Assembly: GCA_904063045.1 (NCBI GenBank)
Contig: CAJFCJ010000011.1
Span: forward strand, 372,001-436,000
Reading direction: 5' to 3'
DNA length: 64,000 bases
DNA from: Dimorphilus gyrociliatus
Taxonomy: Eukaryota > Animalia > Annelida
This document shows, piece by piece, positions 55,669 to 61,664 of the stretch (position 1 is its first letter; every line of letters begins with the position of its first letter). A model generated the notes under the pieces. It had not been told where the DNA came from, searched no databases, and was given only the letters and a program-made list of their open reading frames with translations. The translations under genes and the position numbers were made by a program.

Positions 55669-55845
55669 TAGGTTTTAATAAAATAGAGGTTCGTGTTTAC
55701 TTCGGACGGGGCATGCGCAAGAAATCAATGACTGTATTTATCGCTGGTTCCAAATTCCGAGTCTTTATAGTGACTAGTATCTATGACGCGCACTACTTGT
55801 AGTACTACAATAACGGAAACAGGAAACGGAAACTGAATACCGAGA

Positions 55846-57776
55846 ATGGAAGATTTGAGTTGTCCTGTTACATTTTCCTCCAATCCTACCTCAACCGTTA
55901 TCTTAAGTGAATCCCCATTGTCATTAAACAGTTTCTGTGTTGATAACGACAAGTCTGACATATTTACGGATAAGCTCGACTGTGTGACAAGCTCAAATTT
56001 TATATCTGATTCCAATGTTGTTGTCGATAGCCGAAGGTAAATTAAATGATTTTTTTGGTACGCTTTAAGTTTATTACTATTTTTTCAGTCTTTTATATTG
56101 TTCTGATTTATCTTCAAATGTTACCTTTTCAAATCTTCCCGAATTATCTAACTCTGCAATGCTGGAGGAATGTCATCAACAAGAAGGTGACCCGATTCAC
56201 TTTCCTTCAATTAATGGTACATAGATAAGAACCCTGACAACAAATAATAGCTGATCACTGTAATTAATTTTCCAGGTAACCTAGTAGGTGGAGAAAATGA
56301 TGAAACTCAGCTTTTTCATATAGAAACAGAGGAAGTAGGAGATGGAGTAAATTTAGATAATATAAGTGATCAGTACACATTTGTGACAACTGAGCCATTG
56401 GTAAATGATCGTGCTGACATAACAATCAATGAATATGAATCTGAGGAGTTAGCAGAGCCCCCAAAGGAAAAAAAGAAGGGTGGTTGGCCAAAAGGAAAAA
56501 AGAGGAAAATGGAGTTGATAGATAAAGCCCCTCGAGCCCCCATGTCAGGGTAAGAGTTGTGGTCTAAGGATAATTAACTTAGAATATATAAATGTTAAAA
56601 ATGTTTTAGATATGTTATATTCTCATCTCGAAAACGTTCGAAATTAAAAGAAGAAAATCCAAACAAGACTTTTACTGAAATCACTAAAATGCTAGGTAAT
56701 GAATGGAGTGCTATGTCAGAAGAAGACAAACAAGGATATTTAGAGGAAGCTGAAAAAGATAAAGAAAGGTATCTTAGAGAAATGAAAGAATATAGAAACA
56801 GCGAAAATTACCGTAAATTCCGGAAAAGCCAAAATGGTATGAACTTTTTAATATATAAATAAATTATTTTAAAATATATATATCAGAAATAAAAAACTTA
56901 TTTTTATTAATAAATAGCAAATGGCGTTGAACCAAATACAGATGAAGAGGATGATGATGTAAAATAACATAATATTATAAAAACTTTTAATAATCATATT
57001 ATTCCAACAGAATAACTTATATTGTTCAGTCTGCGACGTTTGTTTTGTAAGTGCTCATAATAAGAGGGAACATTTATTGGGAAAAATTCACTTTGACAAA
57101 GTTACTCGTTTGTAAAAATATTTACTTAAAGCGTATATTTATTAAAAATAAACATTCTTCAATTTCAGAGAATTACAATAAAGATTTATTAAGGCAAAAA
57201 AATGAAAAAGAGAAGCAGGAGAAAGAATTAAGAGATAGTTTTTTAACTCGAAAAGATATCGATCATTTAGATTTAAATTGGTTTTCTGAAGTTCTAATGA
57301 AGAAAAATACCGGTTGGCATACATTTTTAGATACTTTTATTGCTAGAAGTAGGTGATTGAGTAAATATTGTATCTATAAGAAATTTTTATCTTTAAGAAA
57401 TATGTTTACTAGGTGGCGTTACCGATTGTAATGCACTCTAATTTTTCGCAATCTTGATCTTAACAAAACCAAAAGTATTTTACTCTGTTCAATTAAAATT
57501 TTTATCACTCTCTAATACGTTATTAACCTGGTATCAATTTTTATCTTAACAGAAAGAGAATGTGAAATTGAAACTTTGACAAACTCACTACAAGCTAGTC
57601 AACAAAAATTCCATGCAATACAACAACAAATTAACCAGTTGAAGGCTTTTAAACAAAATTATCTAGAGACACTTAGTCACGAGCGAAAATTAAAAAAACA
57701 ACTAGTGAACGATATAAACACTTTAAGAATCGTACCAACTTTATTTGGTGTTAATAGCTTTCAAAGTATGAGATAA
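55846..57776 (+). CDS. HMG20-like HMG-box protein with a U1-type zinc finger and C-terminal coiled coil, multi-exon
   Basis: KKGGWPKGKKRK..KAPRAPMSGYVIF...FTEITKMLGNEW..KQGYLEEAEKDKERY, and CSVCDVCFVSAHNKREHLLGKIH. Confidence 0.75.
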
Positions 57777-57991: not shown

Positions 57992-58318
57992 TTATTCTTG
58001 ATTCTGCGTATAAAAAGCATCAGACTGATCATAAAAGCTCTTGCTTCCGTTTGAGTTACGTTGAAGTAACTTCTCGCTAAAGAAGATATTAAGGAGAGGG
58101 CTAAAGACTATTCGGTTTTCTTTTTTAAATAGAAAGTCTCGACGTATGAAATATTTAGCAAACCACGTACAAAATAATTCAAGATGTGGATTGTCACTGG
58201 TACTATTGCTGTCTGTCATAGAGCTAACGGGAGGGGAGGAGAAGGAATGAAAGGTGAACGGCTTGGTAAAATGACGAATTTCGGTTGGAGAAGAATCGTT
58301 GGAGAGAAAGGTAAACAT
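57992..58318 (-). CDS. Possible 108-aa orphan protein
   Basis: The ATG lies immediately after a polypyrimidine-AG acceptor and the frame is open to 57992. No family recognised. Confidence 0.3.
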   Translation of the reverse strand: MFTFLSNDSSPTEIRHFTKPFTFHSFSSPPVSSMTDSNSTSDNPHLELFCTWFAKYFIRRDFLFKKENRIVFSPLLNIFFSEKLLQRNSNGSKSFYDQSDAFYTQNQE

Positions 58319-58861
58319 TTCTAAATTTAAGAAGAGGAAAACACTAAAAACTAAATATAAAAGAAAATGTATATATGTTATCTCTCTATTAGTCTGATAT
58401 TTCATCTGGGCATTTCTTTCTAGCCGCTTTACTACCGATCACCGTAGTCTGGAGCAGAGCAATTGGCTTCAAGATGGAATAGCGCGGACCATAAGATAGT
58501 GGAGGATGTATTTTGTGTATGAATAACGAACACTTCCTAAGACTGATAAAAAGAAATGGATAATCGCATTTAGTTAAATCCTTCTTCCCCCTCCCTAAAA
58601 CATTTCTTATATTTTTTTGTCTTTATTCCGTAAACGAATAAAAAACGGATTATTAACACGAAGATATATTGTATAATTGTCATTGTGATTAATGGACAAC
58701 TAGTATAAGCATTCATTTTTAAGTACTTTTTTCGCTAGACAAACAAACGGCCCAGTTCATAATTCTATTGTTTCCAATTACATCTGGTAGGCCTGTTGGA
58801 GATAATATAGATCCTGCCGATAGGCCATAATTAGTTCTACAGGGCACTAGTTTGCTAAAAT

Positions 58862-59900
58862 ATGTCGATTAGATCGGAGAACTTTATCGGTTTCTGTTTA
58901 TTAAGCTTCTGCTTATTACTTTGTGGACAAACGTTTTCCGTGACCGACCCGTTTTATGGCTCTGAAGAGATCTCTTCGACAGCAACGACGTTCAAGTCGA
59001 CAGGCAAGGGATTTGATGGTTTTTTAGGAATTGATATAAAGATGATAACCTACATATGCATTGCTCTAGGATCTGGTATATTTTTAAGCATGGTTCTTAT
59101 AACTATTTGTATGGCGTGCTTGAGTGCAAATGCTAGCTTAGATAAGGAAGAAATAGCCTTAAAGAGTGTAAAGAAAGCTGAAGCACCGGCATATTTTGAA
59201 TACGATGTCATCCAAGGAGATATGCCAGAGCCGGAAGTTCATAAACCAAAGCCAAGACCAAGAGATTCTGAAGTTCCTGGAACTTTTAATATATTGAAGC
59301 ACAAACGTATTGAAGATTGTCAGGTTAAAAGTTCCGAGTATGGTTTAAACGGGTGGTCAAAATCGTTAGTTCAAGAAGTTATAGATCAGAATTTGCTCTA
59401 TTTAGCGGTATACAATTTGGATATGCGTAACAGAATTCATGCTGTCGCCACACTATTTGAGGAGGAGGTCCCAAATTTACATATTGCCGATATTGCTTCT
59501 TTTGTTCTAAGCTCACAGAAGGATAAGGCAATTCAGTTCGGTTCGACCATTTTCCACATGAAATTCATCCATACAGACTGCTATGCTGCTACCGGAATCG
59601 CTCAAACAAACAAAGGTAGATTTTCAAATAGGCCCTTAATAAGAAATTTATAATCAGTTTGTTTGTTCAGGTCAAAACCTCACAATGTTTGCCGCTGCCG
59701 CTCCGAAATCTGATAATGCAGCCTTTATAGTAATAGGTATAACCGACACCTCATTGGACGAAGGTCAATGCGAGAGTAGCGTCGCAAGACTAACTGACTG
59801 CTTTCCATTAGAACCCAGTCGACCGCGTAGTTTTGTTGTAGAAGATGAATCAAATGCCTCATATACTCCAATTATTAGGACGGACTCAAAAACAAAATGA
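58862..59900 (+). CDS. Type I membrane protein with a cytoplasmic profilin-like domain, 327 aa (exons 58862-59615, 59671-59900)
   Basis: Signal peptide (aa 1-26), TM helix (aa about 61-88), and residues about 163-295 aligning by eye to profilin from NGW to GQCESSVARLTDCF. The 55-nt GT-AG intron is in phase. Confidence 0.8.
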
Positions 59901-61664
59901 ACGAAAAAAGCAAAACAATCTGTCTGTTTTCTTTTGCTTATGTAACAATGAATGTATCTTAAGTTATTTCTGCTTTTTGTTTGTTTTGCTTATTGGAAAC
60001 ATGCACATTTTCTAATTATAAATGTTATGTTTTTGTAATTTTTTTTTTTTAAAAAAAGAAAAAAAAAGATGCTCAAAGTTTATATTCTACTGTTTTTACA
60101 ATGTAATAAAAACTGGAACGAGTTGTCCTATTAACTTATAAGTTAATTAGCCAAAATGACTTTTGATCTTTAAAAAGAGACTATTTTTGACAGAAATAAA
60201 TTGCAAAGTGTATACGTCATTTAACTGTTTTGGTTTTTATATATATTAAATACAACAGACAGCTACCTGTCACATCTGAGTGTCTTTTAGCATAATTTAT
60301 CTTCTCTTTAGAAAGTACTCGACCGTGTTATACGTGTTTGTTCTTTGGAACAAACTATCACAAAGTTGTACAGAGTTCAAATGAAGTGAGATAGAAAGAT
60401 AACGAATTACATTATAATTTAATTTTGTCTTTCAATTAGATTAGATATACAGAAGGGAAAAACAATTTGCAATATAGTTCACTATGAGTAACAGTATCAG
60501 CACGAACTAGACTAAAGAATATATAAATATGGATATATAAAATACATTCATAGCGTACTCTAATATATTGTATTCTCCAATATATTATATATGATAATAA
60601 TTATCTTAGTTAATTCAATTATATTAATAACAACTAAATAACTTGTACTAAATTGTTTAGCTTTTCTTGTTTTTTTTTTACAGAACTGTTTACTTAAAAT
60701 GAAGCAGTTCCTTTCTCTTTTGAAAGTGAAAATATCCATATTACTAATAAATTTATCTTACATTAAAATAAACCTAAACTTGCAACTTTATTAAAGCGAA
60801 GGTAAAGTTTATATTTGGAAATTTTCCCATACTTGTTATCTTATAGATACCAACCTCTATCATATTTTTTTGAAATTGAACAAACTTTCTATCTTATCTC
60901 TTTTTCACTTTTTCCTTCTATCTATTATATTTAGAATTTAAAACTAGATGGCGTTTTGTTAGAAAAGCTAATGCTTTTACAAAAATCGAATTAGTTAAAT
61001 CTTCAATATATTGATATAATTGATTTGAATGATCTTATACAAGTAAGACAAGATTTAGATAAATCTTCTTAAAAACCTATTACGAAAAATTAGAATTTAT
61101 TAAATTCTCTTTTGTAGATAATAAACTAATCCTTATCGCAAAGTTTTCACAAAGCCAGTTTTGTTAAATACTATTCTATGATAACAAATGCATTTTTAGC
61201 TTTAATTACAACTACAACTATCGATAGGTTATTGGAATGTTGACTAAGTTGATTCAATTGAATTACTTAGAGATGTTAGATAATGAAATCCTATTCCAAA
61301 CTTACAATGTTTAAAGATTGCATAACAAAAATGTTAATGTAATTGTATTGGGGGCCATTTTCTGTTTTATCCTTTATTCAACTCTTTTTGACTTTATGTA
61401 AACTGCAATAATTTTTAGCATTTATGAATTACTTATCCACAATAGATGGCGCGTCAGTATATAATGTTTATTAATGACGTGTGATAAATGAATGAATTAT
61501 ACCATAAAATACCAATTAAGGGCCCGTCGTAAATACTGACGTATCAAAACATGTTCAATTAGTAAAGTAGAAATAAGTTTTTATTGATAAAAAGAAATTT
61601 ATTTCTTGATTTCCGCTGATGTCAAAGTAATTTGTGTTTTGTTCAGTTTTGTCTATTTTTTTGG

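Follow-up and report, generated by a model that had tools for sequence, protein, structure and literature searches.

A two-exon gene of Dimorphilus gyrociliatus encoding a predicted single-pass membrane protein with a possibly profilin-type cytoplasmic domain

The + strand of the window, by which we mean the whole 64,000-nucleotide stretch of the Dimorphilus gyrociliatus genome that was analysed (contig CAJFCJ010000011.1, positions 372,001 to 436,000), carries between positions 58862 and 59900 a real, two-exon gene under strong purifying selection, and its 327-aa product is predicted to be a type I single-pass membrane protein whose cytoplasmic part may contain a profilin-type fold. In the arrangement that we propose, a cleavable signal peptide would be followed by a short, O-glycosylation-type stalk, a conserved transmembrane (TM) helix flanked by Cys residues, a cytoplasmic linker, an alpha/beta domain of ~135 aa and a conserved 29-aa tail, and this gene model and layout account for the data better than the public annotation does. 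As a whole, a type I protein with a likely profilin-type domain acting as a membrane-tethered adaptor is the best explanation we can offer, and we give it an even chance of being correct.

Gene model and purifying selection

The two open reading frames at 58862-59653 (263 aa) and 59685-59900 (71 aa) lie on the + strand at the coordinates reported in a preliminary description of this DNA, which had proposed that they are joined across an intron into one protein. This was borne out. Removal of a 55-nt, phase 1, GT-AG intron (59616..59670) leaves exon 1 (58862..59615, codons 1-251 plus 1 nt) in phase with exon 2, giving a 984-nt CDS of 327 codons, and the same junction (59615/59671) is present in the public model DgyrCDS8406 (P0001, 300 aa), where it reads ...AQTNKGQNLTMFAAAAP...; this NCBI protein is also the closest database match to the exon-1 product and is identical to it across the shared part. 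An intron of 55 nt is ordinary here, since a median intron length of 66 bp has been published (PMC7854359). Further support came from two related worm assemblies, Logan SRR23372228/9 (locus L001, proteins P0002 and P0004) and ERR14224706 (proteins P0003 and P0007), in which the start codon, open frame, intron position and stop are all kept; in both, the exon-1 reading frame runs on into the intron, and exon 2 appears as a call of its own. The L001 intron interrupts the same codon position and has GT...AG ends, is 59 nt long and shares little sequence with that of D. gyrociliatus, and as neither 55 nor 59 is a multiple of three, only splicing preserves the conserved frame of exon 2.

The public model departs from this structure at its 5' end. 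In the affected interval (58184-59071), DgyrCDS8406 begins in an exon at 58184-58312 (+), to which the N-terminus of P0001 maps, and then splices into the middle of the TM helix; everything from the conserved start codon through signal peptide and stalk to the first half of the helix is thereby left out, and the perfectly conserved stretch GIDIKMITYICIALG becomes intronic. This 5' end appears to be wrong for the main product, because all three species (P0002 and P0003 in the relatives) retain the ATG at 58862 together with an open frame downstream of it, because the indels in the divergent signal and stalk part are of 6 and 3 nt, multiples of three, and because GIDIKMITYICIALG is identical at the protein level despite synonymous changes. 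Given the conserved ATG, the frame and the coding character of GIDIKMITYICIALG, the 58184-58312 exon was rejected as part of the main coding sequence, outside which it probably lies. The surrounding block (58116-58320) shares ~80% DNA identity with L001:3258-3460, though nearby synonymous sites are saturated; within it a + strand reading frame (58184-58324) is open in both species and shows conservative replacements, and on the - strand the frame is interrupted by a stop in L001. Possible identities for the block are an alternative first exon, a small ORF or uORF, and a UTR or regulatory element. A second conserved, non-coding block of ~120 bp directly adjoins the start codon (58740..58861, +) and is ~85% identical to L001, again against saturated synonymous divergence in the CDS; TAATTA, CCAAT-like and GATAA motifs occur in it, as does a TAGGCC repeated twice, and the block is a candidate core promoter, enhancer or 5' UTR. 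Searching the conserved blocks upstream of the start codon against Rfam gave no match.

Between D. gyrociliatus and L001 the synonymous differences are saturated (pS 0.82-0.97), and pN rises in steps along the protein. It is lowest in the TM helix and juxtamembrane part (0.025 against a pS of 0.97; 98% aa identity), followed by the C-terminal domain (0.088; 83% identity), the linker (0.20) and the signal and stalk part (0.39; 41% identity in the stalk), and the C-terminal tail is 73% identical. The upstream neighbour is also shared: this multi-exon gene (56096-57773, +) encodes an HMG box (56605-56838), a U1/matrin-like zinc-finger motif (57011-57109) and a coiled-coil exon, and its exons have 76-98% protein identity to L001, so that synteny is kept. 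The shared HMG-box gene and the low pN at saturated pS together mark an old gene under purifying selection and not a chance ORF.

Predicted topology and the membrane-spanning segment

The layout given in the preliminary description, namely a signal peptide, a Ser/Thr-rich ectodomain, one TM helix and a tail, holds as a prediction from hydropathy in all three species. Residues 1-25 (58862..58936, +) form a signal-peptide-like N-terminus, with a 12-aa Kyte-Doolittle value of 2.74 in D. gyrociliatus and 1.7-1.9 in the relatives, and small residues occur at -3/-1 in each species. The poorly conserved stalk that follows (residues 26-60, 58937..59041, +) is 24-29% Ser and Thr. The TM helix itself (residues 61-87, 59042..59122, +) reaches a 19-aa Kyte-Doolittle value of 2.45-2.65 in the three species and ends in Cys residues (Cys83 and Cys86); by the same scale, no other segment in the rest of the protein comes near its hydrophobicity. 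The near-invariance of this helix suggests an intramembrane partner.

Beyond the membrane, the juxtamembrane part and linker (residues 88-160, 59123..59341, +) contain in the three-species alignment a conserved Y-D-V-I motif (residues 114-117, 59201-59212) and a KPKPxPR stretch. At the other end of the protein, after the alpha/beta domain, the conserved tail (residues 299-327, 59811..59900, + strand, ending in the stop codon) has 73% identity to L001 at a dN/dS of about 0.2; its motifs include N-A-S-Y and Y-T-P-I (59862-59873), and the tail is conserved as PRSFVVE..SNASY.PIIR.DSKT, with N-x-x-Y and Y-x-P-I. The two Tyr-x-x-hydrophobic motifs could serve in sorting or in phospho-signalling.

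Hydropathy and the charges flanking the TM helix agree in all three species with a type I single-pass protein, with a cleavable signal, a stop-transfer helix and a cytoplasmic C-terminus, an assignment made from sequence. Cleavage of the signal would place the C-terminal 240 residues in the cytoplasm, where they probably lie, and were the signal uncleaved or unused, an N-out orientation would still be favoured because the N-terminal flank is the more acidic. The same protein could instead be oriented differently, the N-terminal segment being no cleaved signal and the C-terminal domain facing the lumen or the outside, as might be argued from the weakness of the N-terminal hydrophobic stretch in the two relatives, from TM-flanking charges that are nearly balanced in D. 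gyrociliatus, and from three conserved N-x-S/T sequons in the C-terminal part (N89-A-S, N254-L-T and N313-A-S), which would also fit a lumenal orientation. We consider this quite improbable: in both relatives the acidity of the N-flank exceeds that of the C-flank, favouring N-out, the number of conserved Cys residues in the domain is odd (three), and the Tyr-x-x-hydrophobic motifs and the basic, Pro-rich stretch are typical of cytoplasmic tails.

The predicted cytoplasmic domain and its possible profilin-type fold

On the AlphaFold model and the VIA structural alignments, the candidate profilin-like domain is split by the intron into a first part (residues 161-251, 59342..59615, +), with the invariant Trp165 at 59354-59356, and a second part (residues 252-298, 59671..59810, +). 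It had been proposed from the order of secondary structures and from six short motifs that residues ~163-295 adopt the profilin fold. Pfam returned no match to the profilin family (PF00235) even at E 10, whether exon pieces, the whole of P0001 or the domain alone was searched, and a sequence search of the PDB by phmmer with a single sequence, or with a first profile, found nothing. To compare the family with profilins directly we used a narrow, plant-only profile of 31 rows, made from natural plant profilins in metagenome contigs that were retrieved using a degenerate DNA pattern encoding the motif KYMVIQGE and were confirmed as profilins at E 6e-78 to PDB profilins. Aligned to this profile with hhalign, the three-species family gave one local match, of residues 271-296 (IVIGITD...GQCESSVARLTDCF; 59727..59804, +) to columns 101-126, with 42% identity, a score of 28.7 and P 3e-4, a score that 0 of 300 column shuffles reached (null 12.3 +/- 2.4). 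This segment, corresponding to the last strand and the C-terminal helix, is the sole part of the domain with above-chance similarity to profilin.

As the preliminary description had chosen profilin from this very motif, an unbiased search of the PDB is the fairer test. Against 177,635 distinct PDB sequences, a 43-residue profile around the motif retrieved profilins as six of its eight matches, plant profilins first and aligned in the correct place, at E-values of only 0.3-1.5; a value of 0.3 is at noise level, as marked by the unrelated C2 protein that the N-terminal piece of the domain matched at E 0.8. The middle piece of the domain found nothing in the PDB. Outside the motif, similarity to the plant profile is slight at best: local hhalign of residues 161-269 gave P 0.5, and in a global alignment of our own with shuffles (the global mode of hhalign having given only meaningless end-overlaps) residues 163-268 showed no significant similarity (z 1.1), the N-terminal 44 residues were marginal (z 2.0, reached in 10 of 300 shuffles) and the middle of the domain had no similarity (z 0.07, 129 of 300 shuffles). 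Of the six motifs, then, only the last two stand, FIVIGITD and the GQC...ARLTDCF helix, which form the one stretch 271-296, and the others are no better than chance. The GQC of D. gyrociliatus is GNC in both relatives.

Trp165 is invariant in the three species and aligns with profilin Trp3 in the global alignment; the VIA ranges put the two at most one residue apart. This Trp is the only one of the four aromatic residues of the poly-proline site (Trp3, Tyr6, Trp31/33 and the C-terminal Tyr) that is kept, in agreement with the preliminary description: in the global alignment Tyr6 falls in a gap, the position of Trp33 is not conserved as an aromatic, and the C-terminal Tyr is replaced by Cys295. 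Canonical poly-proline binding is for this reason unlikely, and a role as an actin regulator, as had been suggested, could at most be inferred, because the aromatic cluster is not kept. We regard it as very doubtful, judging by these replaced residues, that the domain would retain the canonical functions of profilin.

The structural comparisons started from a single-sequence AlphaFold model of the cytoplasmic part, which is of low confidence (pLDDT 47, five models 33-47, and 52-73 across the domain). Its elements are a helix at 167-174, a strand at 178-185, helices at 194-202 and 208-216, five strands between 223 and 276 and a helix at 282-294, so that the order over residues 167-294, H-E-(E)-H-H-E-E-E-E-E-H, is that of profilin with the second strand unmodelled. 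A model built with a 5-row alignment was worse (pLDDT 34.5) and different, did not reproduce the fold and was left out. Foldseek against the PDB gave no match at E<1e-3 to the model, its matches being a mixture of Bet v 1, Mog1 and SciW. By VIA-align against 48,161 chains, the KICS2 tail (Z 8.0) and the Gse1 roadblock domain (7.8) led the list and about ten profilins stood in the top 28 at Z 6.0-7.6, and in a second VIA comparison about 20 profilins at Z 7.0-7.6 came directly below KICS2 (8.0-8.1), with 12-18% identity to plant and mite profilins; since models that have no true match commonly reach Z 7-8, and entries less than 1 Z apart count as equal, the profilins tie with the KICS2 tail and roadblock within the noise range of the tool. 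The profilin alignments run from residue 1-2, set against model residues 71-77, to the last residue of the profilin (for example 2v8c_A, 118 of 139 residues, rmsd 3.6). Neighbours in the ESM Atlas, compared by shape and features, were bacterial proteins of DcrB, PsbP and DUF4946 type, all below the reliability marks, with no profilin among them. The proposal of a profilin fold thus finds partial support in the order of helices and strands and in the end-to-end matches to profilins, both of which come from the pLDDT-47 model, but none in Pfam or in a Z score set apart from those of non-profilins.

These results can also be accounted for by an orphan, lineage-restricted membrane protein with a cytoplasmic domain that has no kinship to profilin and is some generic alpha/beta sandwich, be it roadblock/KICS2-like, Mog1/PsbP/DcrB-like or new, with the C-terminal motif arising by chance or convergence. 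The tie at the head of the VIA list, the mixed Foldseek matches, the ESM Atlas neighbours, the empty Pfam result and the four fifths of the domain without profilin similarity, together with the PDB E-value of 0.3, all fit such a protein, yet roadblock has three strands past the central helix where the model has five, like profilin, the profilins are covered end to end and outnumber each other family in the top ranks, and the only above-chance sequence match is to profilin, in the same structural position. We rate the generic sandwich as a serious possibility that nonetheless falls clearly short of even. A remnant papain-like (C39-like) peptidase fold, by comparison, seems extremely improbable. 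It was raised by matches of the domain profile to 9jdd_A and 9jg8_C ('Peptidase C39-like domain-containing protein', E 0.022 and 0.11, over 70 columns), in which the conserved Cys240 lies opposite a target Cys that may be the catalytic Cys of the C39-like protein. Papain-like folds carry this Cys on a helix; the AlphaFold model makes the Cys240 stretch a strand, no His follows Cys240 anywhere in the protein, the top 50 structural matches include neither C39 nor papain-like chains, Pfam gave no peptidase match and the single-sequence search was empty. The bacterial match at E 0.022 was accordingly rejected, for want of a His after the aligned Cys and of structural support.

A profilin-type fold for residues ~164-298 is, on the model and alignments, the best available reading, and a profilin-type sandwich is reasonably probable. 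It gains weight because one small family supplies both the most numerous structural matches and the only sequence match above chance, because that sequence match occupies the equivalent position in the structure, and because the limits of the domain, with the invariant Trp first and the helix last, fit a whole profilin; the sequence and structure lines are not fully independent, as AlphaFold may be steered by the same motif. On this reading the domain would consist of an N-terminal helix bearing the invariant Trp, two strands, central helices, five strands and a C-terminal helix, and it may be a very diverged copy of profilin, for which descent we put the chances at nearly, but not quite, even. 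In the membrane-tethered adaptor that we infer, this small alpha/beta binding module would sit at the cytoplasmic face, and its strand surface would face a cytoplasmic partner; the strand block 220-276 is the most conserved surface of the domain. The most specific version, that residues 164-298 are a true, highly diverged profilin descendant, permanently tethered to the membrane as a type I cytoplasmic domain and coupling a membrane site to a partner in the actin machinery without a soluble intermediate, is unlikely on present evidence, if worth keeping in view.

Known systems, neighbourhood and distribution

Profilin is usually treated as a free, soluble regulator. The domain described here resembles it in size (~135 aa), in the predicted order of a helix, two strands, helices, five strands and a helix, in the Trp at the start of the first helix, and in a last strand and C-terminal helix that recall I-G-I-x-D...G-Q-C...V-x-R-L-x-D; profilins are also the most numerous of its top structural matches. 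It differs in having no Pfam match, in the replacement of three of the four poly-proline-site aromatics, in a middle part without detectable similarity, and in its fusion to an N-terminal signal peptide, TM helix and 70-aa linker where profilin is free and soluble. In our literature search, no paper describing a membrane-anchored profilin was found.

The longin-domain SNAREs (Sec22b, VAMP7 and Ykt6) likewise hold on the membrane a cytoplasmic domain that has been described as profilin-like (PMC6523435; 10.1101/2021.01.02.425092), but in these tail- or lipid-anchored proteins the fold is N-terminal and a SNARE motif is present, whereas the protein described here lacks a SNARE motif and has its TM helix ahead of the domain; the longin domain also ranked lower by VIA (Z 5.9). 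Roadblock/LC7 proteins (Ragulator/LAMTOR, Gse1) and the C-terminal domain of KICS2 share the alpha/beta/alpha sandwich at an equal or slightly higher Z (7.8-8.1) but have fewer strands past the central helix, and sequence similarity to them was not found. Ragulator is also membrane-tethered, though via the lipid anchor of a partner protein and not by its own TM helix. If the profilin reading were true, the protein would represent a new way to localise the profilin fold, as part of an integral membrane protein; should the domain prove to be something else, this is still a deeply conserved, taxonomically restricted membrane protein with an almost invariant TM helix.

An exhaustive phmmer search of 1.84 billion representative proteins recovered as homologues the two relatives and two false positives (P0005 and P0006), the latter rejected as having matched via tandem repeats, and word-index searches found the same two relatives only; searches of this kind may miss very diverged relatives elsewhere. 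No paralogue of the D. gyrociliatus protein was present among the representative proteins at E<=1e-3 (phmmer). The suggestion that the gene is lineage-specific is thus supported, its relatives being confined in these searches to two assemblies, which share synteny and are presumably of dinophilid worms. The interval 55809-56218 yields long conserved translations against L001 on both strands (81% over 81 aa on the - strand, 90-93% on the + strand). Finally, of the sampled words of the locus (58700-60000), 17% occur in a coral metatranscriptome run and 9% in a marine metatranscriptome run, with one probable DNA run also listed, which hints that D. gyrociliatus or a close relative was present in the coral and marine samples.
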